The notes beneath the pieces are model-generated. The model was not told the DNA's origin, searched no databases, and worked only from the letters and a program-made list of their open reading frames with translations. The position numbers were made by a program, and so were the translations under genes. A stretch of DNA of 64,000 bases, from positions 1 through 64,000 of IMG/VR virus record IMGVR_UViG_3300042502_001233; one strand, 5' to 3'. Shown piece after piece: positions 5,306 to 62,300 of the stretch (positions are counted from its first letter, which is position 1; every line of letters begins with the position of its first letter).

Positions 5306-5320
5306 AACATTTATGTTTAG

Positions 5321-5393
5321 TTGAGTAAGAGGGTTTCGAACCCTACGCTACCACCCGTCTAGGTGGTCTTCTAACCAATTAAAGTATTACCCA
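5321..5393 (-). tRNA. degenerate tRNA, anticodon uncertain
   Basis: TGGGTAA/TTACTCA acceptor, D and T arms; anticodon loop not 7 nt. Confidence 0.45.
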
Positions 5394-7373: not shown

Positions 7374-7405
7374 AAAAAAAGCCTGACATTTTTACTGTCA
7401 GGCTT
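7374..7405 (-). terminator. attenuator terminator of Phe/Glu/Asp/Ala tRNA operon
   Basis: AAGCCTGACA-GTAAAAA-TGTCAGGCTT followed by U tract. Confidence 0.85.
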
Positions 7406-7430
7406 ATCATTTATATCGTTAATTTAAACG

Positions 7431-7520
7431 TTAACTTATGACAGTGTTTGACCTTCCGTAAGAGTAATCCTCCTCGGCTGCGAAAAATGCAAAATCAAAT
7501 ATGTTAGTTAAAGTTCTCAT
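7431..7520 (-). CDS. attenuator leader peptide MRTLTNIFDFAFFAAEEDYSYGRSNTVIS
   Basis: 29-aa ORF between promoter and terminator; 11 consecutive F/D/A/E codons; 3' ACTGTCA complementary to terminator 5' arm. Confidence 0.8.
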   Translation of the reverse strand: MRTLTNIFDFAFFAAEEDYSYGRSNTVIS

Positions 7521-7601
7521 TGTGTTTTCTTTTTGTATTTGTTTATAAATATGCGACTTTTTTTAAAAAGTCATTTTTTTTCTTTGTTTTTAATTATAGT
7601 G

Positions 7602-7633
7602 CAAAGATACGAACTGTTTTAATACATGTCAAG
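7602..7633 (-). promoter_or_regulatory. Bacteroidetes-type housekeeping promoter
   Basis: CTTGAC...TATCTTTG, matches the TAnnTTTG -7 element; same motif recurs upstream of many units. Confidence 0.7.
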
Positions 7634-10471: not shown

Positions 10472-10500
10472 AAAAAAACCCATCTGGTTAGGATGGGCTT
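10472..10500 (-). terminator. attenuator terminator of Cys/Val/Leu tRNA operon
   Basis: AAGCCCATC-CTAACCA-GATGGGTTT-TTTT, 12 nt before tRNA-Cys. Confidence 0.85.
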
Positions 10501-10528
10501 TTTGAGAGAGATACTTATCTTATTCAGA

Positions 10529-10612
10529 TTAGTTAACACACAAGAAGCCCAGCTGTGTTTCCACAAGCAAGCATAAGCTTAAAAGGACTAATATGTTAAA
10601 AGTATTTCTCAT
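10529..10612 (-). CDS. attenuator leader peptide MRNTFNILVLLSLCLLVETQLGFLCVN
   Basis: 27-aa ORF rich in L/V/C; TGGGCTT complementary to terminator 5' arm AAGCCCA. Confidence 0.8.
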   Translation of the reverse strand: MRNTFNILVLLSLCLLVETQLGFLCVN

Positions 10613-10653
10613 TTTGTTTTTTTGTTTTCTGTAAGTTAAACTTTGATACAGTG

Positions 10654-10685
10654 CAAATATACTAACTATTTTAATACAAGTCAAG
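10654..10685 (-). promoter_or_regulatory. Bacteroidetes-type promoter
   Basis: CTTGAC...TATATTTG. Confidence 0.7.
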
Positions 10686-18299: not shown

Positions 18300-18509
18300 T
18301 TACCAACTATCGTAGTCGGTTATATCTTTTTTAACTTCAAACAATCCTTTTTCTTTGCTTTTTATAATAACTTCAATGTTATCACCAATACCAGTTGGTG
18401 TAAAGCAAAACGTTCTTGTGTAATATGTCTCATGACCGTATAATGTTTTAACAGCGTCTTCAACTTCTTTTAAGTTTTGTTTTTCTTTTTCGTTTAAACT
18501 AAAATCCAT
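18300..18509 (-). CDS. hypothetical protein
   Basis: MDFSLNEKE...DITDYDSW. Confidence 0.6.
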   Translation of the reverse strand: MDFSLNEKEKQNLKEVEDAVKTLYGHETYYTRTFCFTPTGIGDNIEVIIKSKEKGLFEVKKDITDYDSW

Positions 18510-19798
18510 TAGTGTTCCATTTGTATTAAATGAGAAATTGTACATTGTACTGGATTGTAAATGATAAACTCATCATTTCTCAAGTCAGCACCACCGTGAG
18601 CGTATACGCTATCAAAACCATCCTTTTGGATGTTAGAGTAACTCAAACTATAGCATGATGAATCATGTTTATGAATGTGTTTCTCGTTCCCTAAATGTAC
18701 ATCGAACAATGCCAAGAAACCTATTTGAGAATTCCCTCTAGTCCAATGAGAACCTGATAGAGAACTATACCCTAGCGATTTTTGGCTCTTGTTTGCAAAA
18801 TATACACCATCACCGAACATTGAACCAGTATACACCGCGCCAGAAGGTCTAATCATAAGACCAGTCTGAATAATGTTAAACCAGTTCTCGTTACGCGAAC
18901 CATGCCAGTAAAGTCTTTTCTTTTTAACTTTGGCAGTTTTAAAGTGAGCATCAAACTTAGCTTGTGTAGCCAAGTTAACCACTTTGAAAATCTTTTTAGC
19001 TTTGTTGGCGTTATCACCCAATAATTTGGTGATAAGGTTAAGAGTTTCACTGTCTTTTTCAACTTCAACTTTAAGACCCATTTGAGTAAGAATGTCAATG
19101 TCTGACATTTCTTCACCAGTGGTTTCAACAGTTTGTTTTTGTTGTTTGATAAGTTTAACCTGACCAGACATCGTATCTAACGCGCTTTGTTCTTCACCCA
19201 ACAACCTTTGTGCTTTTTCTAATTCAACATCGTCACCCAACCCTTGAACCAAATGGTTTTTAACGTTGTCCATCTTTCTTGGGATGATTGTGTAAAGCTT
19301 CAACAACTCGTTGTTAACGTCTTTAAGGTCACCACCAACTTTCAACATAGCAGTTACTCTTGATAACACTTCTTGAGCCGATTCCACTTGTTGTTCAGAA
19401 ACTGCATCTTGTGTTACTTTGTAGTTTTTCTGGATAGACTTATTCGCGTATGCCATAAGGTCTTGGACCAATTTCTTAACCATTGCGTCTTTGATTGCTT
19501 CAACGGTATTGTTTTTTGATGCACCGTTTGAATCATCAACAACTGGTTCAGCTAACAATTCAGTTACGTCAGTGTAACCTTTGGTTGATGACGTTTTTTC
19601 GCGTAAGATTTTATCCCACTCGTTTTTACTTTTAAACACAGTAGCCATGTTTTTACCCACTCTACCATACTCACATTTTATTCTACCATCTGAAAGTTCT
19701 TCCATGATGTAGACTTTGTTGCTATTGTCTGTTTTACCATTGTCTACCGACACGTGAATCAGTTTAGCATATCTTAACCCGTTTTCTTTTGTAACCAT
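18509..19798 (-). CDS. PARP-like ADP-ribosyltransferase (WGR + regulatory + catalytic)
   Basis: YGRVG; LYTIIP; YWHGSR, GSMFGDGVYFA, KSLGY, NDEFIIY (H-Y-E triad). Confidence 0.9.
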   Translation of the reverse strand: MVTKENGLRYAKLIHVSVDNGKTDNSNKVYIMEELSDGRIKCEYGRVGKNMATVFKSKNEWDKILREKTSSTKGYTDVTELLAEPVVDDSNGASKNNTVEAIKDAMVKKLVQDLMAYANKSIQKNYKVTQDAVSEQQVESAQEVLSRVTAMLKVGGDLKDVNNELLKLYTIIPRKMDNVKNHLVQGLGDDVELEKAQRLLGEEQSALDTMSGQVKLIKQQKQTVETTGEEMSDIDILTQMGLKVEVEKDSETLNLITKLLGDNANKAKKIFKVVNLATQAKFDAHFKTAKVKKKRLYWHGSRNENWFNIIQTGLMIRPSGAVYTGSMFGDGVYFANKSQKSLGYSSLSGSHWTRGNSQIGFLALFDVHLGNEKHIHKHDSSCYSLSYSNIQKDGFDSVYAHGGADLRNDEFIIYNPVQCTISHLIQMEH

Positions 19799-26719: not shown

Positions 26720-26776
26720 AACTTTTTTTTATTATAAATATCTAGAAATATTAGAAAAGTTAGATTAGTATCAAAT

Positions 26777-33066: not shown

Positions 33067-33999
33067 TTAAGTTTGATTTATCAAGTGAATAATTGAAGGG
33101 TTGTAAACTATTATGTGTTTTATATTTTCATAGTCTTTATTTACTATGATTCCGTCAATACCTAAAGAAACACAATTTCTAACAAATTCAACTGGGTTAT
33201 ATCTGTAAAAATCAATCCATACTTGAAGAATGCAGTCTTTTTCGTTATCATTGAAGTTCATACAACCTTCAACAAATTCTTGCATACCTCTTATTGGATT
33301 TTCGTCCCAATTTTGTGCACTACCTTCCCAATCTTCAGCCATCATAGCTAATTTTTTGATATAAGGTCTTAATTTATTTTTGTTTATTGGAACTTGGTCA
33401 AATAAAACTCTTGGTGTTAGTTTTACACTATAGATATTTTCACCATAACGACCAGCTTCTTCTTTTGATGTGGTGAAGTAAATACCTGGACCTTCTAGGT
33501 CATTGGCTTCTTTACCACCAACAAAATCATCCATAAATTTAGTTATTTTGGTTGGGCTACCGTGAAATACGTAGTATTCACCACCATCGATTGATTCTGG
33601 TAATAAATTTTCCCTAAGCAAAGTCTTAATCAAAAACTTATTCTCGTTTAACGAATTTAACATAAAATTACAGTTTGGAAATAAAATAATTTCATTGGTT
33701 TCACCATCTTTCATTGTGATAATCGCATCATAACCCAAACCCATTAATTTTTTTGTTAATTGTTTACCCTTGGCTTTATATTCTTTAGCCAATTCGTATT
33801 TGTAAGAAATTTGGGTGTCATCGTCAACCTCTATTGTAAGTGGATTTTTTATTACAGCCAAACCAGAAACCCATGGTTCTTTAACTGGTCTATCAGTATC
33901 TTTTTCAATCACATATGTACCAGATGGTTCAACATCTTGACCGAACATAGAACCGTAGTATTGTGCTGGTTCCATGTTTTTCATTATCCTTAATATCAT
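33067..33999 (-). CDS. ADP-ribosyltransferase-like (ART-PolyVal-type) protein
   Basis: FHGS, GPGIYFT..A..Y, GIDGII; second degenerate N-terminal copy (GYDAII). Confidence 0.6.
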   Translation of the reverse strand: MILRIMKNMEPAQYYGSMFGQDVEPSGTYVIEKDTDRPVKEPWVSGLAVIKNPLTIEVDDDTQISYKYELAKEYKAKGKQLTKKLMGLGYDAIITMKDGETNEIILFPNCNFMLNSLNENKFLIKTLLRENLLPESIDGGEYYVFHGSPTKITKFMDDFVGGKEANDLEGPGIYFTTSKEEAGRYGENIYSVKLTPRVLFDQVPINKNKLRPYIKKLAMMAEDWEGSAQNWDENPIRGMQEFVEGCMNFNDNEKDCILQVWIDFYRYNPVEFVRNCVSLGIDGIIVNKDYENIKHIIVYNPSIIHLINQT

Positions 34000-34039: not shown

Positions 34040-34127
34040 TGGAGGAGAATATGGGATTCGAACCCATGGGCCGAACTAACGGCCACGGTTTAGCAAACCG
34101 CTCCAATAACCACTCTGGCAATTCTCC
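34040..34127 (-). tRNA. tRNA-Ser(GCT)
   Basis: class II cloverleaf with CCA. Confidence 0.93.
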
Positions 34128-34134
34128 AAATTTG

Positions 34135-34170
34135 TACCCCTACAGGGACTCGAACCCCGATTCTAGCCTT
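34135..34170 (-). pseudogene. orphan 3' half of a tRNA
   Basis: GGCTAG-AAT-CGGGG-TTCGAGT-CCCTG-TAGGGGT-A directly after the HNH stop codon; no 5' half. Confidence 0.7.
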
Positions 34171-34771
34171 AATTTTTGTAATTTTTTAAATATCGGTCTT
34201 TTCTAGCTGAGTTTTTATTTTTAGATTTATATGTATCTAATTGTGAATCACAATTATGACATATTAACCTTAAATTATTTCTCATATTATTAGACGCATT
34301 TCCGTTAATATGGTCTAAAATAAAATTCATAGGTTTACCATTCCAAACATTTTTAATATTACATATATCACATTCACAATTTTGTTCTATTAATATATGT
34401 TTTTTCAATGGTGCTAAATCTTTATTAGCGTTACAAAAATCTTCTTGATTACTCAAATAATTTTTATAGTATTCTTCAGTTTTATGTTTTACCCAACATT
34501 CTTTATTACAATATAATTGTTTATCATAAGAAGTGTTAACTTCTTTACCACAACACAAACAATTTATTTTCTTACCCTTACCAGTGTTAACTGGTTTGAA
34601 ATTTTCACCAAATTTTGCTCTGATTGGTAATTCAATTCCTAATCGTTTACATACTTTTTTTATATATGTATCAGAAACACCGTATTTTTCACCAATTTTT
34701 CTATAAGAAATTTTTTGAACAAAAATTAAATCTTCTAGGTCTACTTTTTTATATTTTTCATTATAATCCAT
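34169..34771 (-). CDS. HNH homing endonuclease
   Basis: LDHINGN...NLRLICHNC. Confidence 0.85.
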   Translation of the reverse strand: MDYNEKYKKVDLEDLIFVQKISYRKIGEKYGVSDTYIKKVCKRLGIELPIRAKFGENFKPVNTGKGKKINCLCCGKEVNTSYDKQLYCNKECWVKHKTEEYYKNYLSNQEDFCNANKDLAPLKKHILIEQNCECDICNIKNVWNGKPMNFILDHINGNASNNMRNNLRLICHNCDSQLDTYKSKNKNSARKDRYLKNYKN

Positions 34772-34849
34772 AATATTTTTTTATTATAAATATAATGAAT
34801 TCGAACCAAAAGTCAACTATTTTTAAATTTAATTTTATGTTCAGATTTG

Positions 34850-34922
34850 TGACCTTATCGGGATTCGAACCCAAACGACAAATTTAGAAGATTTGTATGC
34901 TAATCCGTTACATCATAAGGCC
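34850..34922 (-). tRNA. tRNA-Arg(TCT)
   Basis: CAAAT-CTTCTAA-ATTTG. Confidence 0.88.
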
Positions 34923-34940
34923 AGTTATTATTTAATGTTG

Positions 34941-35014
34941 TGGCTCCGACAGGGCTCGAACCTGTGACCCACAGATTAGAAATCTGTTGCTCTGTCCATC
35001 TGAGCTACGGAGCC
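34941..35014 (-). tRNA. tRNA-Arg(TCT)
   Basis: ACAGA-TTTCTAA-TCTGT. Confidence 0.93.
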
Positions 35015-35021
35015 AATTTTT

Positions 35022-35098
35022 TGGTGACCACGGTAGGATTCGAACCTACAACCTCCGCAGTCGTAATGCGGTGCGCTATCCAGTTGCGCCACGTGGCC
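35022..35098 (-). tRNA. tRNA-Arg(ACG)
   Basis: CCGCA-TTACGAC-TGCGG, CCA. Confidence 0.93.
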
Positions 35099-35104
35099 AG
35101 TATT

Positions 35105-35177
35105 TGGTACCGAGTATGGGAGTCGAACCCATGTATTCATCTTTATGAGGGATGAACGTTTTCCTATAACCCTCGGC
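35105..35177 (-). tRNA. atypical tRNA with CAT anticodon (Met/Ile2)
   Basis: short D arm, extended anticodon stem TTCATC/GATGAA, CCA. Confidence 0.65.
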
Positions 35178-35183
35178 ATTTTG

Positions 35184-35257
35184 CGGCCTCGACAGGATTC
35201 GAACCTGTAACCCTTGAGTTAACAACTCACCGCTCTAACCATTATAGCTACGAGGCC
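35184..35257 (-). tRNA. tRNA-Asn(GTT)
   Basis: cloverleaf, G73. Confidence 0.9.
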
Positions 35258-35264
35258 TTTTTTT

Positions 35265-35340
35265 TGGCGGCCTAGGTAGGATTCGAACCTACACGCCTCA
35301 CCTTAACAGGGTGCCGCTCTACCGTTGGAGCTACTAGGCC
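35265..35340 (-). tRNA. tRNA-Asn(GTT)
   Basis: cloverleaf, CCA. Confidence 0.92.
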
Positions 35341-35446
35341 AATTTTATATTTTTATCAATACACCGAGTACCACAATTACGGTGCGCCTCTGGCCTACTC
35401 GCCAGCAATGCTGTTTTTACCCGTGGTTACACCATTTGATAGGGTG

Positions 35447-35520
35447 TGGTCCCCTCGGGACTCGAACCCGAAACCGTCGCGTTATGAGCGCGCTGCGCTA
35501 ACCAATTGCGCCAGAGGACC
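35447..35520 (-). tRNA. tRNA-CAT (Ile2 or elongator Met)
   Basis: GCGCG-CTCATAA-CGCGA. Confidence 0.88.
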
Positions 35521-35763
35521 TTATTTACGTTTTTCAACAAGATAGTTAATGTAATCTTCGTAGCCATCATCATCATCATCATCATCATCATAATCATCAT
35601 CTTCTGGTTCAAAGTCTTCATCTAACATTTTATCCAGAACTTCAAAAGCTATTTTCATTACTTCGTTTTCTTTACCCTTTAATTGTGGGTTAGGAAGCAA
35701 AATGAACAATCCAACTATGGCTTCTACCAATCCTTTTTCATTTTCACTATATTGTCTTTTCAT
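35521..35763 (-). CDS. acidic hypothetical protein
   Basis: poly-Asp encoded by GAT repeat. Confidence 0.6.
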   Translation of the reverse strand: MKRQYSENEKGLVEAIVGLFILLPNPQLKGKENEVMKIAFEVLDKMLDEDFEPEDDDYDDDDDDDDGYEDYINYLVEKRK

Positions 35764-35765
35764 AG

Positions 35766-35849
35766 TTGTGACGGTGGGGCTCGAACCCACATTGTGTTAT
35801 AAACACCCAGCGTATCAGGCTGGTGACTAAACCATTCATCCACATCACA
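35766..35849 (-). tRNA. tRNA-Ile(GAT) with long variable arm
   Basis: CCAGC-CTGATAC-GCTGG + GTGTT-TAT-AACAC hairpin. Confidence 0.8.
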
Positions 35850-35856
35850 GTTTTCG

Positions 35857-35930
35857 TGGGTAACACGGGAGTCGAACCCATAACCTCTCGCGTATCAGGC
35901 GAGTGCTCTAACCAGTTGAGCTAGCTACCC
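35857..35930 (-). tRNA. tRNA-Ile(GAT)
   Basis: canonical. Confidence 0.93.
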
Positions 35931-35938
35931 ATTATTTG

Positions 35939-36011
35939 CACGGACCAAGAGAATCGAACTCTTTCCATTCGAGGTTTTGGAGACCTGATGCATGCCATTA
36001 TGCTGGCCCGT
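35939..36011 (-). tRNA. tRNA-Trp(CCA), slightly atypical
   Basis: AGGT-CTCCAAA-ACCT, G73. Confidence 0.8.
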
Positions 36012-36019
36012 ATTTAATT

Positions 36020-36113
36020 TATCACCAAAGGATTCGAACCTTTACACCCTTCTCGGGTTACCGTTTTCACTACAGCAGTCAGTACCCAGTTTACTCTTTT
36101 GACTCACGTGATA
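36020..36113 (-). tRNA. degenerate tRNA-Ser(TGA)-like
   Basis: acceptor, long variable arm, T arm; enlarged D loop, G33. Confidence 0.45.
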
Positions 36114-36120
36114 AATTTAG

Positions 36121-36207
36121 GGTGAAAAGACGGGACTCGAACCCGCAAGGACATTTCTGTCATCTGGCTCACAACCAGACTCGCTACCGTTACGTACTAC
36201 AATCACC
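36121..36207 (-). tRNA. tRNA-His(GTG) with long variable arm
   Basis: TCTGG-TTGTGAG-CCAGA + GACA-GAAA-TGTC; imperfect acceptor. Confidence 0.75.
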
Positions 36208-36216
36208 ATGTATTTC

Positions 36217-36849
36217 TTATACTCGACCTAATCTCCAATTATCTGGAATTAAATCATCTTTTTTAATCTTTTTATTTTCACTACCATTTGTTACCCATCG
36301 ACTACCAAATTGTGAATTTGTTTCACCAACACCAGTACCTTTTTTTACTTTAGACATTAATTGTTTAGATTCATGACTATGGGTTTCACCTTCCCAATTT
36401 TTAATCCAATTTTTATCTCTAGTACCAGTTAAATATTCTAGTGTTCTAGCTGTTGATATTTTATTACTTTTCTTTTCTACCCATTCTGGGTCTTGTCTTA
36501 AAAGCTTTTGTTTTTCGTTTGATTTAATCGCATTCAATTTTTGTTGTTCCGAGCTAAACCCACCAGTACCACCTTCTCTAAGATTCATACACATAGGGTT
36601 TTCCACCAACTCTTTAGTAACAATTTCAATCTCTCTAAGAACCATTTCTTCTCTTGTAGGTAAAAATTCAAGTATTTCTTTTGTATGGTTTTCCACACCA
36701 TGTTTTCTAATTGAATACCTAAGTCTTTTACCACTCCCCATATAACCATCTTCCAGGTTATATGCACTATGCATTCCTACATAATATCTTCCCGTTACAT
36801 TACATGTTGTTTTATATATGTAATGTATGTTTCTTTGTTTTCTTGCCAT
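36217..36849 (-). CDS. GIY-YIG (Seg-like) homing endonuclease
   Basis: YIYKTT..YYVGMH..DGYMGSG; paralog of 57153..57812. Confidence 0.88.
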   Translation of the reverse strand: MARKQRNIHYIYKTTCNVTGRYYVGMHSAYNLEDGYMGSGKRLRYSIRKHGVENHTKEILEFLPTREEMVLREIEIVTKELVENPMCMNLREGGTGGFSSEQQKLNAIKSNEKQKLLRQDPEWVEKKSNKISTARTLEYLTGTRDKNWIKNWEGETHSHESKQLMSKVKKGTGVGETNSQFGSRWVTNGSENKKIKKDDLIPDNWRLGRV

Positions 36850-36908
36850 TTCTCTTTCTTTCTAAATAAATATCTTAAGAAAGAGAAAAGTACAAAAAAG
36901 TTTAAGAG

Positions 36909-36983
36909 GGTGGTATATCGGGTTCGAACCGATGACCCTCGACACCACAAGCCGATGCTCTAACCAACTGAGCTAATACCACC
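36909..36983 (-). tRNA. tRNA-His(GTG)
   Basis: canonical, G-1:C73. Confidence 0.93.
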
Positions 36984-37076: not shown

Positions 37077-37511
37077 TTATTTTTGCGGTGAATATTTTTC
37101 TATATAATTTATTAAATTATTCAAATAATTAATATCTTCTTTTACATTACCCAACAATTTATTACATTTGTCACATAAAATATCTCTAACAACACCAGTT
37201 AAATGACAATGGTCCACATGTGTGTTTTTATCATTTTTTAGAACATCACTACAGATAGAACATTTATTATCTTGTTTATCTAATTTTAAAAAATATTCTT
37301 CTTTTGTAAGACCATAATTTCTTAAAATTGAATTATATTTTATTTTTTCTTTCTGAATAGGGTTTTGATATCTAATCTTAGTCCTATTATTTTCACACTC
37401 TTTACAATAATGATTTAAACCATCTTTATTATAATTCTTAATACCAAATAAATCAATACTTTTTACTTCTTGACATTTGGAACATCTTTTTACGTTCGTA
37501 TTTATTTCCAT
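37077..37511 (-). CDS. endonuclease VII-like HNH protein
   Basis: YGLT...QDNKCSIC..VDHCH..G.VR.ILC..CN. Confidence 0.85.
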   Translation of the reverse strand: MEINTNVKRCSKCQEVKSIDLFGIKNYNKDGLNHYCKECENNRTKIRYQNPIQKEKIKYNSILRNYGLTKEEYFLKLDKQDNKCSICSDVLKNDKNTHVDHCHLTGVVRDILCDKCNKLLGNVKEDINYLNNLINYIEKYSPQK

Positions 37512-37580
37512 ACTAATAAATATCTAACATTTTGTAAAAGTGCGGATAATTTTTAATATTCACCGCATTTGTAAACTTTG

Positions 37581-37668
37581 CGGAGATAGTAGGATTCGAA
37601 CCCACAAGCCGTTTCCGACCACAGTTTTCAAGACCGCCAAGCTTAGTCCACACTGCTCTTATTCTTCC
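37581..37668 (-). tRNA. tRNA-Ser(TGA)
   Basis: GCGGT-CTTGAAA-ACTGT, long variable arm, G73. Confidence 0.8.
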
Positions 37669-37850
37669 AATTCATCGTCCTTTTTAATCTCTACAAAGAT
37701 TACGGTGAACCCACCTTCTTTATGAAATCTTAGCTCTCCGTGATATCCACTGGCATCAGCTATCTTTCTGTACTTATCGACTATCAGGTCGAAATCTTTT
37801 GTAAGGTTTACAGTTTTCTCTGTTCCTAATTTTCTCACCAACTCACCCAT
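37659..37850 (-). CDS. hypothetical protein
   Basis: 63-aa ORF, first cistron after attenuator. Confidence 0.6.
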   Translation of the reverse strand: MGELVRKLGTEKTVNLTKDFDLIVDKYRKIADASGYHGELRFHKEGGFTVIFVEIKKDDELEE

Positions 37851-37861
37851 AGTCTTAAAAT

Positions 37862-37896
37862 AAAAAAACCCGATTAAGTTTTCACTCATCGGGTTG
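37862..37896 (-). terminator. attenuator terminator of Ser/His/Trp/Ile/Met/Asn/Arg tRNA operon
   Basis: AACCCGAT-GAG...CTTA-ATCGGGTT + U tract. Confidence 0.85.
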
Positions 37897-37921
37897 TATA
37901 TTGTTATCTTTTGAATTCTTA

Positions 37922-38020
37922 CTAGAACTCTATGATGTCACAATTAGACATACCCGACACTTGGTGACTATTGCGTCTCCAATTCGAAATCGAAATCATA
38001 TGTATGTTAATTGTTCTCAT
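37922..38020 (-). CDS. attenuator leader peptide MRTINIHMISISNWRRNSHQVSGMSNCDIIEF
   Basis: 16 consecutive I/N/H/M/S/W/R codons; GTCGGGT complementary to terminator arm ACCCGAT. Confidence 0.8.
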   Translation of the reverse strand: MRTINIHMISISNWRRNSHQVSGMSNCDIIEF

Positions 38021-38056
38021 TTTGTTTTATTTTTAATGTTGTTTTTAAATTCTTTG

Positions 38057-38088
38057 CAAATATACGAACTTATTTAATACAAGTCAAG
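38057..38088 (-). promoter_or_regulatory. Bacteroidetes-type promoter
   Basis: CTTGAC...TATATTTG. Confidence 0.7.
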
Positions 38089-39607: not shown

Positions 39608-40801
39608 TCAAGATAATCCTAATAATTTTTTAAATTTATCAGTTTCCATTTTTTGAATGGCTTTTCCAAGTTCAGGTCCAGGACCTATATTGAATTTTTC
39701 CATCGCTTCTGGACCAGTAACTGTTAGTCTGAACTCTTCAAAAGCATCTAGCAATTGTGATGATATACCTTCGTTGCTACCAAAATTTCTAATTTGGTCG
39801 TTGGATACTCCAGAAGTTTGTTGTACTTTCTTTAATAAGTAAGCAGTGTCAACATCTAACTTCAATAATGAAATTAAAAACACAATGGCTTTAATCTCAT
39901 CCGATGAGTATTTTAAATCATTTAGTTTTTTTCTCAATACATCAACGTTGTTACCTTTTAACAACCTAGCTAACAATACTATGTAATCATCAGCTTTGTA
40001 ATCAGAGTTTCTTCTAAATACTCTTGTGTCTACATCCAAATTAGGAAATATCCAATCAAACAATTTGTATTTGTCTAACATCAACAAGTAAGCGTCGGTT
40101 GATTTAGCTGATATAAGCCCTTTGATAAATTCATCTCTAATACGTTCACCAGAAATACCTTCAAGACTAGCATCTTGTTGTAACGCAGCATCTACGTCAG
40201 GGTCCAACCCACTACCAAATCTACCAGCCAGTCTTATACCTCTAAGTTTACGTAATTTATCTTCACTAAACCTGTCTTCTGATTTACCAACAGTGCGTAT
40301 AACAGAATTTTTTAAATCAACGATACCACCTACTAAATCTACTACTTCTTGGGTGTCCATATCATAAAACAAAGCATTTACACTAAAATCTCTTCTTAAA
40401 ACATCAGATTTTATATCTGAAAATTCAACGTAATCTGGTCGTCTACCATCACTACTACCGATATCTTTACGCATAGTAGCTATCTCATATTCACCATCTG
40501 TAGTTATAACATTAACCACACCAAACGCTTTACCTGTTTCCAATATATTTGTAACAAATTCTTGATTTTTTAATAAATTTATTACGTTATCTGGTGTGGC
40601 ATTTGTTACTAAATCAAAATCTTTTGGTGTTACATTAAGTAACATATCACGAACTGACCCACCAATAGGGTATAATTCAAAACCATTTTTTTTAAAAATT
40701 GAATGAATTTTATTAACATTTGTCGGAAATTTAAAATAAATTTTTAATCTCTTCTCTGATGTTAAATTTTTTTTTAAAATTTCCTTTATAATTGTTTTCA
40801 T
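39608..40801 (-). CDS. cca: CCA-adding tRNA nucleotidyltransferase (class II)
   Basis: GGSVRD..DFD, EIAT.R, RRDFSVNA, EDKLR.LR; most tRNAs here lack an encoded CCA. Confidence 0.88.
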   Translation of the reverse strand: MKTIIKEILKKNLTSEKRLKIYFKFPTNVNKIHSIFKKNGFELYPIGGSVRDMLLNVTPKDFDLVTNATPDNVINLLKNQEFVTNILETGKAFGVVNVITTDGEYEIATMRKDIGSSDGRRPDYVEFSDIKSDVLRRDFSVNALFYDMDTQEVVDLVGGIVDLKNSVIRTVGKSEDRFSEDKLRKLRGIRLAGRFGSGLDPDVDAALQQDASLEGISGERIRDEFIKGLISAKSTDAYLLMLDKYKLFDWIFPNLDVDTRVFRRNSDYKADDYIVLLARLLKGNNVDVLRKKLNDLKYSSDEIKAIVFLISLLKLDVDTAYLLKKVQQTSGVSNDQIRNFGSNEGISSQLLDAFEEFRLTVTGPEAMEKFNIGPGPELGKAIQKMETDKFKKLLGLS

Positions 40802-41673: not shown

Positions 41674-41747
41674 AAATTTAATTTTATAATAAATATCTCT
41701 TAATATCCTAAAAGTGTCTTGTTATTTTGCAAAGATACTACTATTTT

Positions 41748-57053: not shown

Positions 57054-57057
57054 CTAG

Positions 57058-57145
57058 TTGCGGAAGTAGGACTCGAACCTACAACACAGTGTTACTGCTC
57101 CTCTAGGTTATGAGCCTAGCATGTTTCCATTTCCACCATTCCGCG
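57058..57145 (-). tRNA. tRNA-Met(CAT), initiator-like C1:A72, long variable arm
   Basis: CTAGG-CTCATAA-CCTAG + 20-nt variable arm. Confidence 0.8.
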
Positions 57146-58849: not shown

Positions 58850-59227
58850 TGGTGGAGTTATGGGGAATCGAACCCCAGTGTTGCATATTCTTCAAAAGCT
58901 TTCTACATGTTTATCTAGTTTCTAATTCTAGCAAAGTTGTGCTGCGTTATTTATCCCGATGGAAGTGCAGCGACCATCGTTCCTTTTTTTACAACTAGGA
59001 AGTTGGTTCTTGGTGATTTATCACCATCAAGTGGAATTACCACTATTAGCTATAATTAGGCTACAGCTACCTCTCCTGCGAAACTGAATGCAGCTTCGTT
59101 AAGGAAATTTTCAGAAACGATGAAATCGTTGTCAATTCAATTTTTTAATAGACAGATTAAAGTGCTTCCAATCTAGCACTACATGCTTACGATTTACGAC
59201 TATATCCAGTCAATACCGTTTAACCCC
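58850..59227 (-). ncRNA. ssrA: tmRNA
   Basis: GGGGTTA/TAACTCC-A-CCA acceptor with G3:U70, T arm, tag ORF DNDFIVSENFLNEAAFSFAGEVAVA*. Confidence 0.9.
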
Positions 59228-59325: not shown

Positions 59326-59637
59326 TTATTTTTCTTTTTCTTGAAACGAAGATGGTAATATGTACTTGTTAAGTTTTAAATACTTGGTAAGTATAAAGAA
59401 TATCGTACCACCAGGCAACAATGCAATACCAACCAACCCCGTAGTCTTCAACACATCTTTCAGTTGCTCACCAACCTTGTTCTTTTCCTCTTGAGTCAAT
59501 TTTTTACCTTCTTTGACCGAGTCAACAATCAACATGAAAGCCTCTTTGGTTTCGAGGCTTTCTTGTTCAGTGTTTTTTATAAAGTCTTTGGCGTTAACCT
59601 TAAGTTCTTTATAATATTTTTGAATGGTTGAAAACAT
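59326..59637 (-). CDS. hypothetical protein
   Basis: 103-aa ORF, ALLPGG. Confidence 0.65.
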   Translation of the reverse strand: MFSTIQKYYKELKVNAKDFIKNTEQESLETKEAFMLIVDSVKEGKKLTQEEKNKVGEQLKDVLKTTGLVGIALLPGGTIFFILTKYLKLNKYILPSSFQEKEK

Positions 59638-60356
59638 TATTTCTTTCTGTTTATGATTATATCATCAACAATACCGTAAGCTTTAGCTTCTTCTGCATTT
59701 AACCATAAATCTCTGTCAGCATCTATTTTAACTTGTGCTGGGTCTTTGTCAGTATATTGACCTAACAAACCAAACAAAAGTTCGTTGTATTTCCTAGCTT
59801 CTGCCAATGAGATTTCAATGTCTTGAATAGTACCTTGTGCACCACTTGATACTTGGTGTAACATTACTCGACTGAAATTCAATGTAAATCTCTTGCCTTT
59901 GGTTCCAGCACCCAAAAGGATACTACCCATACTAGCAGCCATACCAGTGTTGATTGTGATGATATCGGACTTAACGTAGTTCATAATGTCTACGATTGAC
60001 AAACCTGATTTAACGGAACCACCTGGACTGTCTACGTGCAAGGTGATGTCTTTCAATTCTAAATTGTCCAAGAACAATAACTGTGCTTGTACTACAGTGC
60101 TCATTCTATCGTTAACTGGACCAGCCAACCAAATGATTCTATCCATCATCATTCTGGAAAAGATATCCATTTGAGTTACCCTCAATTCTCTTTCTTCAAG
60201 GATATATGGTGTCAAAGATGCTGACGGACCAGTTGTAATCAAAGGAGCTTGCGCACCATAGATTTTTTCTTGAAGTTGTTCCCAATTGTGGAAATCTATC
60301 CCAGATATCCCCATATGCTTAATAGCATAGTCTTTAAATTCTTGCGTGTAATTCAT
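59637..60356 (-). CDS. clpP: ATP-dependent Clp protease proteolytic subunit
   Basis: DIFSR..DRII, SPGGSV, GMAASMG, MLHQ, DRD. Confidence 0.95.
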   Translation of the reverse strand: MNYTQEFKDYAIKHMGISGIDFHNWEQLQEKIYGAQAPLITTGPSASLTPYILEERELRVTQMDIFSRMMMDRIIWLAGPVNDRMSTVVQAQLLFLDNLELKDITLHVDSPGGSVKSGLSIVDIMNYVKSDIITINTGMAASMGSILLGAGTKGKRFTLNFSRVMLHQVSSGAQGTIQDIEISLAEARKYNELLFGLLGQYTDKDPAQVKIDADRDLWLNAEEAKAYGIVDDIIINRKK

Positions 60357-61280: not shown

Positions 61281-62300
61281 TTATCCTTTATTTGCAAGTT
61301 TTTCTTTAAGATTTATCACAGCTTCTTTAGCTTCATCATCCAAAACTTTAGGTATTTCAATACCTAACGTAACTATAAGGTCACCTCTACCATCTTTACC
61401 GTATACACTAACACCTTTAAACGGAACTCTAAGGTTAGTACCAACGTCGCTATACTCTGGAACACTCATTCTTATTTTGTTACCTTCAATTGTGTCTATT
61501 TCTACTTTGTCACCCAAAACCAATTGTGGATAAGATAGTTTAAGATTCATCTTTAAATCAGGACCTATTCTAGTAAAGACTTTATGTGGTAACTCAATAA
61601 TTTTTATGTGTAAATCACCATTGTTTCCTGATTTAACACCTTGACCTTTACCCTCCATTACAAATGTCATCCCATTTTGAATACCAGCTGGAACTGTAAC
61701 TTGTACAGTTTCTTTTATGTTTGTTAACCCACTACCACTACATGTGTTACAAGGAGTTCTATGTTTGGTCCCAGTAGCGTCACATGAAGGGCAAGGTTGT
61801 GTTGTTTGAAAAACACCCATTGGAGTTCTGGTAAGACTTGTTACCATACCGCTACCATTACAAGATGGACAATCATATGGGTCAGTACCACCGTGACCTT
61901 CGCAGTCTGTACAACTAACATTTCTGTTGTAGTTATAGGTTTTATTCACCCCAGAGAATATTTCTTCAAGGGTTAATTTAACAGTTAAGCTAAGAGTTTC
62001 ACCAACCCTAACTTGTTTATGACCTTGGTTGAAATGACGACCAAAGATATCATGAAAACCTCTAAACATATCATCTGGGTTGCCTCTGTTATCTGAATTG
62101 TGTCCAAATCTGTCATATTTTGCTTTTTTATCATCATCGGACAAAACTTCATAAGCTTCAGACACTTCTTTGAACTTATCTTCATCACCACCCTTATCTG
62201 GGTGTAACTCTTTGGCTAGCTTTCTATAAGCTTTCTTGATTTCATCTTGTGAAGCGCCTTTGGCTAACCCTAAAACCTCATAATAATCTCTTTTACTCAT
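61281..62300 (-). CDS. dnaJ: DnaJ chaperone
   Basis: J domain HPD, four CxxCxGxG repeats. Confidence 0.95.

Follow-up and report, generated by a model that had tools for sequence, protein, structure and literature searches.

It has long been asked why many tRNA genes are found in large phages, and the main answers proposed are compensation for codon usage, substitution for host tRNAs that have been degraded, and evasion of defences that cleave tRNAs. The DNA analysed here, a stretch of 64 kb that we call the window, raises a more local question: what does a short ORF do between a promoter and a terminator at the head of a tRNA operon? The window is AT-rich (32% GC) and is apparently part of a very large phage genome. 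ARAGORN called 32 tRNAs in it, all on the minus strand, and it also encodes a DNA ligase and several homing-endonuclease ORFs. The sequence elements of the locus, called cassette C below, suggest that it is a ribosome-mediated (leader-peptide) transcription attenuator, which would couple the tRNA operon to the decoding of its cognate codons. We put the probability of this reading at about 0.8.

Cassette C and the tRNA operon behind it

Cassette C spans 38087-37862 on the minus strand and consists of a promoter, a 32-codon ORF, a long-range hairpin and an intrinsic terminator (Table 1). The promoter sequence is almost identical in two further cassettes of the window, A and B. The ORF at 38020-37922 begins 36 nt past the promoter -10 element, behind an A-rich 5' UTR without a Shine-Dalgarno sequence, and is kept in frame in relatives, with synonymous changes in its core. 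The layout of a promoter followed by a short ORF is common to cassettes A and B and to more than 25 unique relatives. Codons 4-19 of the leader, here named the sensor, read INIHMISISNWRRNSH; both the presence of this leader and the seven amino acids of its sensor agree with the initial annotation.

Directly behind the sensor lies GTCGGGT (37958-37952), which is indeed complementary, as had been claimed, to ACCCGAT (37894-37888) in the 5' arm of the terminator. The two terminator arms are AACCCGAT (5', region 3) and ATCGGGTT (3', region 4). In our model, the small hairpin at the stop codon would act as a spacer helix between regions 2 and 3. A consensus terminator scan missed the hairpin of cassette C, in which a longer stem bears an internal loop and a loop of 4 nt; the scan called the terminator of cassette A, and that of cassette B only on the other strand. 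Folding was used for the terminators instead.

The tRNAs called by ARAGORN in operon C are two tRNA-His, one tRNA-Trp, two tRNA-Ile, one tRNA with anticodon CAU (Met or Ile2), two tRNA-Asn, Arg(ACG), two Arg(UCU) and Ser(GCU). Their amino acids are the same seven as in the sensor, and no others. The first gene past the terminator is a conserved 63-codon ORF, which is kept in relative L001 with mostly silent changes. The tRNA-Ser(UGA) of the window has two acceptor-stem mismatches and is called neither by ARAGORN nor by Rfam. In relatives this gene is intact and found at the same place, overlapping the 3' end of the 63-codon ORF. Homing endonucleases lie in front of and within the array (Table 1), and relatives that lack these insertions have their tRNAs closely packed behind the putative attenuator. 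The genes downstream of cassette C are tRNAs, small ORFs and homing endonucleases, with none for amino-acid biosynthesis or aminoacylation among them.

A tRNA remnant beside the HNH ORF had been suspected to be a destroyed tRNA-Gln, in line with the Gln codon that follows the sensor. This part of the initial annotation fails, as the remnant matches the 3' halves of tRNA-Arg genes of relatives. The tRNA-Gln genes are found in a different operon, which has its own Gln-containing leader.

The motif ATATTTATWR is over-represented window-wide (23 occurrences against 4.8 expected) and precedes many ORFs by 10-25 nt, among them the two endonuclease ORFs with starts at 37511 and 34771. Example sites on the minus strand are 37514-37523, 34784-34793, 26732-26741 and 41687-41696, and another copy lies at 7543-7552 in cassette A, past the promoter and ahead of the leader ATG. 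The motif could mark a second class of promoter or serve in translation initiation. With promoter-like motifs at endonuclease ORFs in the array, some internal, independent transcription of the tRNAs is possible, which counts against the attenuator reading.

Other small genes accompany the cassette. A very basic 37-codon ORF (38222-38109, minus strand; MPSHKRKAHSRV...) has its own promoter of the cassette type and ends directly before the cassette C promoter. The 80-codon acidic ORF inside the array contains a run of eight Asp (GAT repeats) in a longer acidic tail. A Pfam search gave no match for either of these ORFs or for the 63-codon ORF. Around the tRNA operons, the window holds a set of translation and proteostasis genes (CCA-adding enzyme, tmRNA, ClpP, DnaJ). 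ClpP, DnaJ and the PARP-like and ART-PolyVal ADP-ribosyltransferases are located at 59637-60356, 61281-62300, 18509-19798 and 33067-33999 (-).

Table 1. Coordinates of the cassettes, their tRNA operons and associated genes in the window, and of the leader starts in LR745206.1.
Feature	Position	Strand	Details
Cassette C promoter	38057..38087	-	TTGACT (38087-38082), 17-nt spacer, TATATT(TG) (38064-57)
Leader ORF C	37922..38020	-	32 codons + TAG, TAA directly after
Sensor run C, codons 4-19	37964..38011	-	only Ile, Asn, His, Met, Ser, Trp and Arg codons
Region 1	37989..38014	-	includes conserved AACATA of the N-I codons; pairs with region 2 in ribosome-free RNA
Region 2	37941..37958	-	GTCGGGT + TATGTCTAATTG
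Stop-codon hairpin	37913..37930	-	small; between regions 2 and 3
Intrinsic terminator C	37862..37895	-	dG -14.4, then seven U
Conserved 63-codon ORF	37659..37850	-	first gene past the cassette C terminator
Decayed tRNA-Ser(UGA)	37581..37668	-	anticodon 37630-37628; intact in relatives
Endonuclease VII-family ORF	37077..37511	-	PF02945, E 6e-22; between leader C and first intact tRNA
Operon C tRNA array	34040..36982	-	12 ARAGORN tRNAs + weak tRNA-like pieces
GIY-YIG-like ORF	36849-36217	-	interrupts operon C array
80-codon acidic ORF	35763-35524	-	inside operon C array
HNH ORF	34771-34169	-	interrupts operon C array
tRNA-Arg 3' half	34135..34170	-	beside HNH ORF
Cassette B	10472..10684	-	promoter, leader ORF 10612-10529, region 2 TGGGCTT (10551-10545), terminator 10500-10472
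Cassette B tRNAs	10459-8686	-	Cys, Val, Leu x4 (four isoacceptors)
Cassette A	7374..7632	-	promoter, leader ORF 7520-7431, region 2 ACTGTCA (7445-7439), terminator 7405-7374
Cassette A tRNAs	6940-5401	-	Phe x2, Glu, Asp x2, Glu, Ala; preceded by an HNH ORF
CCA-adding enzyme	39608-40801		window
tmRNA	58850-59227		window
LR745206.1 leader	342380		sensor HKNFSKSHKWFS; tRNAs His, Phe, Trp, Lys(UUU, CUU), Arg, Ser
LR745206.1 leader	365029		sensor IASYESYYEEG; tRNAs Glu(UUC, CUC), Tyr, Ile, Gly, Met, Ala
LR745206.1 leader	387700		sensor of 25 residues, 24 in set; tRNAs Asn, Arg, Leu, Val, Ile, Thr, Met
LR745206.1 leader	406703		sensor PVNPQPQDQDP; tRNAs Pro, Asp, Gln

Correspondence between sensor codons and operon tRNAs

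In none of its six frames does the window contain a run of residues from the set {H,W,I,M,N,R,S} longer than the sensor of cassette C. As the six-frame frequency of this set is 0.33, only ~0.002 runs of 16 residues are expected window-wide, which bears out the earlier statement that such a match is very unlikely by chance. It had also been claimed that each of the 16 codons has a cognate tRNA downstream. This holds for 14 of the 16 codons, for which a cognate tRNA gene is detectable in the window. The two TCG codons need the tRNA-Ser(UGA) that has decayed here, which counts against the attenuator reading. In relatives L001 and L004, all 16 of the 16 sensor codons are cognate to operon tRNAs, and every anticodon species of the operon has at least one codon in the sensor.

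The cassette promoter, identical at most positions, recurs at 10684 and 7632, where cassettes B and A precede two other tRNA operons. The leader of cassette B has 27 codons with the sensor LVLLSLCLLV, and that of cassette A has 29 codons with the sensor FDFAFFAAEED. A fourth type, D, has sensors such as TYQTQYQPKGGKP and precedes tRNAs for Pro, Lys, Gly, Gln, Tyr and Thr. It is present on L069, a contig of 362 kb whose leaders A, B and C are identical to those of the window. The amino acids of the four operons (F,E,D,A; C,V,L; S,H,W,I,M,N,R; P,Q,K,G,Y,T) make up exactly the 20. We compared leader residues 7-20, chosen by a fixed rule, with the amino-acid sets of the operons in a 4x4 matrix. 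The diagonal matches were 11, 9, 13 and 13 of 14 residues, against 0-2 off the diagonal, with a binomial P of 2e-6 to 4e-5 per cassette.

The match from codon to tRNA extends to cassettes A, B and D with rare exceptions. A few sensor positions lie outside the set, which counts against the attenuator reading; they are an AGC Ser codon in cassette B and Asn, Thr and Gln in the LR_1 cassette of LR745206.1 (described below); the N-terminus M-x-T-x-x-N-I, which is common to the leaders, also lies outside the amino-acid sets. The sensor cores of relatives contain ~13 synonymous variants and two amino-acid changes, and one core variant replaces the Ser codon TCG by AGC, an exchange of one isoacceptor of the operon for another. 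At the edges of the sensors, most changes remain in the set. Such synonymous and within-set variation is typical of a translated sequence under selection for the tRNAs that it calls. The sensors furthermore favour wobble-read codons that are rare in the long ORFs of the phage itself, where the frequencies are 0.06 for TCG, 0.01 for CGC, 0.04 for GTC, 0.04 for GGC, 0.03 for CCG and 0.08 for ACG. We read this preference as tuning for sensitivity, with structural constraints as an alternative.

Relatives were collected by scanning the promoter pattern over IMG/VR and metagenome contigs, which returned dozens of loci. The pattern retrieved cassettes at 14 viral-contig loci, and 26 + 2 unique cassettes were collected. 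With a stricter pattern, every match in IMG/VR was followed by a leader ORF and tRNA genes; a looser pattern also matched promoter-like sites with neither leader ORF nor tRNAs. The scan of species-representative bacterial genomes gave no cassette and three promoter-only matches, two of which were in Bacteroidales or Bacteroidaceae MAGs.

Among these relatives, the operons are not always divided in the same way. One lineage (L019, L043, L054 and L064) has a single merged operon with tRNAs for Cys, Val, Leu, Asp, Phe and Ala. Its leader run LALLDCTAVLFDAFDAL consists only of L, A, D, C, V and F; Glu is missing from the run, and tRNA-Glu was not found either. In L035, the sensor draws on the same T,K,Y,Q,G,P set in a different residue order. 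A search of the GenBank phage collection with a 2.5-kb region gave only tRNA-Ser similarity, and this match led to LR745206.1, an uncultured phage of 634,780 bp with four cassettes of the same build and a different grouping of the amino acids. A 634-kb genome is among the four largest complete genomes of the huge-phage study, in which the largest genomes were placed in the Mahaphage clade with predicted Bacteroidetes hosts (PMC7162821). When the operon labels of nine cassettes, drawn from three lineages, were permuted in all 9! = 362,880 ways, no assignment other than the true one reached the observed fit. Hence, sensor composition tracks operon content across lineages. The link first noticed in cassette C is thus reproduced in two paralogues of the window, in the fourth cassette on L069 and in two other phage lineages.

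Several other tRNA loci have peculiarities of their own. In some relatives (L005, L014, L029 and L036), the A-type Phe/Glu/Asp/Ala operon contains a tRNA with anticodon UCA (an opal reader, called 'SeC' by ARAGORN); at the end of operon A in the window (5320-5393), a tRNA-like gene with a 4-base anticodon call (agac) takes its place. At 44423-43946 (-), a tRNA with anticodon CUA (an amber suppressor, called 'Pyl' by ARAGORN) has its own promoter. The ORF directly after it has an in-frame TAG at its third codon (M-T-stop-I-N-N-Q...), and the rest of this ORF resembles, by eye, a type 2 peptidyl-tRNA hydrolase. The combination suggests that TAG is recoded in the phage.

At 1523-1252 (-), a cassette-type promoter is followed by ~190 nt of structured region with a mini-ORF (MEVPPLYRKINET) that contains two consecutive CCT codons. 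This region has no U-run terminator and precedes a 'tRNA-Pro(AGG)' of ARAGORN that is not called by Rfam; the region is perhaps a sensor of another kind or one that has decayed. ARAGORN made a similar 'Pro(agg)' call at 421470 of LR745206.1. At 58400-57944 (-), a promoter and ~400 nt of non-coding sequence without an Rfam match precede an initiator-like tRNA-Met, and a second, odd CAU tRNA of 89 nt lies at 57057-57145 behind a GIY-YIG ORF. Initiator-type tRNAs lie outside any leader cassette in both the window and LR745206.1 (364870).

The predicted RNA switch and its rival explanations

In folds of the ribosome-free leader C RNA, region 1 is paired with region 2 and the terminator is formed; the minimum free energy is -44.7 kcal/mol (z = -4.69). 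GTCGGGT of region 2 can pair either with region 1 or with the 5' arm of the terminator. When the sensor was masked and the 3' arm was absent, region 2 paired with the terminator 5' arm in all 14 of the 14 representatives subjected to constrained folding. The same 2:3 fold was obtained for three LR745206.1 cassettes, with LR_3 left out. The cassette terminators have hairpins with a dG of -11 to -20, followed by 6-8 U. Two results count against the attenuator reading: the contiguous 2:3 pairing is only 6-9 bp long, and the terminator is usually more stable than the antiterminator in equilibrium folding.

The terminators differ among cassettes, and in each of them a segment of 6-9 nt directly behind the sensor matches the 3' arm of the cassette's own terminator. 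Examples are TCGGGT, CAGGT, CGGGTCA, TGGGCTT, AGGGTC, CGGACT, ACTGGGT, GCTAGG, GTCAGAC and CTGAGGGTT. The segment shifts with sensor length, from codon 21-23 in most cassettes to codon 27 in the merged type and codons 28-30 in LR_3. Column-wise covariation in a MAFFT alignment misaligned the D terminators by one column, and we therefore used a register-free matrix of leaders against terminators with permutations. For ten distinct classes, this gave p = 4.5e-5 for the longest Watson-Crick run and p = 3.5e-4 for duplex energy. The computed folds and this co-variation thus give mutually exclusive 1:2 and 2:3 pairings, placed such that a stalled ribosome could select 2:3. With the promoter, short ORF, sensor and 1:2, 2:3 and 3:4 elements all present, the earlier reading of the locus as an attenuator gains support.

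Weak evidence for the attenuator reading comes from a freshwater metatranscriptome, in which an assembled contig of a close relative covers 37938-38023 at a word depth of 18.5; the contig ends are uninformative. In the assembled contigs of the relative, mean depth is 0 just past the terminator (37674-37840) and ~3 over the downstream endonuclease ORFs.

Under the attenuator reading, transcription would start at the conserved promoter, and a ribosome would load on the A-rich leader despite its lack of a Shine-Dalgarno sequence and translate the 32-codon ORF. When the aminoacyl-tRNAs for all of codons 4-19 are plentiful, the ribosome would pass, regions 1 and 2 would pair, the 3:4 terminator would form and the polymerase would stop at the U-run; termination would likewise be expected when no ribosome has loaded. 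Scarcity of any one cognate tRNA would stall the ribosome within the sensor and keep region 1 off region 2, such that GTCGGGT and its flank could pair with the emerging 5' arm of the terminator, and transcription would read through into the tRNA array. The new tRNAs would relieve the stall and close a negative feedback loop. The sensor would thus work as an OR gate whose inputs are all the tRNA species of its own operon. Slowed decoding could follow from host tRNA depletion, anticodon-nuclease attack or the codon demand of late phage genes. The sensors are written almost wholly in cognate codons, and more phage tRNA is probably made only when ribosomes run short of it. That these huge phages run a complete demand-driven circuit of tRNA supply, in which a few OR-gate leaders cover the 20 amino acids and essentially every phage isoacceptor, seems to us reasonably likely.

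The same architecture might serve a different signal, namely amino-acid starvation sensed through uncharged tRNA, with the tRNA output incidental or for another purpose. Classical trp and his attenuators do respond to tRNA charging, and the sensor is blind to the difference between a missing and an uncharged tRNA. However, the sensors match isoacceptors and not just amino acids: the two codon boxes of Ser and the two of Arg are represented, as are GAA and GAG (with tRNA-Glu UUC and CUC) and four Leu anticodons. Making tRNA cannot cure starvation, so that selection for so exact a match is hard to explain by this signal, which we consider unlikely. Slightly less likely again is an output other than termination, where the leader is translated and stalling matters, but acts on RNase processing, precursor stability or Rho access, with the hairpin as a constitutive partial terminator. 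The short antiterminator and the greater equilibrium stability of the terminator would fit this. Yet region 2 co-varies with the 5' arm of its own terminator and shifts with sensor length, and neither is needed unless the terminator is switched.

Trans action is known for leader peptides and attenuator RNAs (peTrpL and rnTrpL), and the small ORFs here might likewise encode trans-acting peptides, or the terminated leaders might be trans-acting small RNAs, with a composition biased for that reason. But L035 keeps the amino-acid set without the order, substitutions stay in the set, and each of nine cassettes matches a different tRNA set. None of these patterns is expected of a peptide with a fixed function, which makes trans action very improbable. 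By chance, finally, a spurious ORF might lie between an unremarkable promoter and an unremarkable terminator in AT-rich DNA, and Ile and Asn codons are indeed abundant in AT-rich genomes. Against this stand the statistics for the run, the matrix, the co-variation and the permutations, given as 1e-5 to <1e-6, and the repetition of the pattern in independent cassettes and lineages. The statistics effectively refute chance as an explanation.

Comparison with known regulatory systems

If the attenuator reading is true, autoregulation of tRNA genes by ribosomes that stall on the genes' own codons would be seen here for the first time, and phage tRNA expression would be regulated by demand. The cassettes would then be a concrete, portable element for testing the competing ideas on phage tRNAs, and would provide natural codon-specific stall reporters for synthetic biology. 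They would also suggest that transcription-translation coupling works in the presumed Bacteroidota hosts. Full-text literature searches found no description of leader-peptide control of tRNA operons, and the huge-phage paper has no occurrence of "attenuat" or "leader" (PMC7162821).

In Rfam searches at the gathering threshold and at E <= 1, the only matches were tRNAs, a tmRNA and chance-level scores for Trp_leader (RF00513; 23.3 bits against a gathering threshold of 41, E 0.18), Thr_leader (RF00506; 21.3 bits against 55, E 0.82) and the rnk leader. The His and Leu leader families did not score at the gathering threshold, and the T-box (RF00230) was matched at neither cutoff. T-box riboswitches also sense tRNA status by codon-like recognition and switch between terminator and antiterminator in front of translation-related genes. 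They bind uncharged tRNA directly, however, without a ribosome or an ORF, whereas cassette C has a conserved ORF and not a specifier loop.

The closest resemblance in build is to the leaders trpL, hisL, leuL, thrL, ilvL and pheL of Proteobacteria, which likewise have a translated leader with regulatory codons, 1:2, 2:3 and 3:4 hairpins and an intrinsic terminator. In these attenuators of biosynthesis operons, stalling at a hungry codon leads to read-through, as proposed here, and in thrL and ilvL one sensor likewise serves two or three amino acids. In contrast, the cassettes described here are phage-borne and would regulate tRNA genes instead of enzymes, up to seven amino acids and about nine isoacceptors come together in a single sensor, and four sensors partition all 20 amino acids. 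Leader-peptide attenuation would thereby be extended from the sensing of a single pathway to a multiplexed sensor.

The pheST operon of E. coli, an aminoacyl-tRNA synthetase operon, is also controlled by a leader-peptide attenuator. It shares with the phage cassettes a target in the translation apparatus and feedback through the supply of charged tRNA, but controls a protein enzyme for a single amino acid, whereas the cassettes would control the tRNA genes themselves. In the Salmonella mgtCBR leader, a short ORF enriched in proline codons likewise selects between stem-loops and sets downstream transcription (PMC3641672). There, the signal is a single amino acid, the output is a bacterial virulence operon and the codons are not known to correspond to downstream tRNA genes. 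By their sequence, the cassettes would work like leader-peptide attenuators and stand outside every curated family: the principle is known, and the new output would be the very tRNAs that read the sensor codons.
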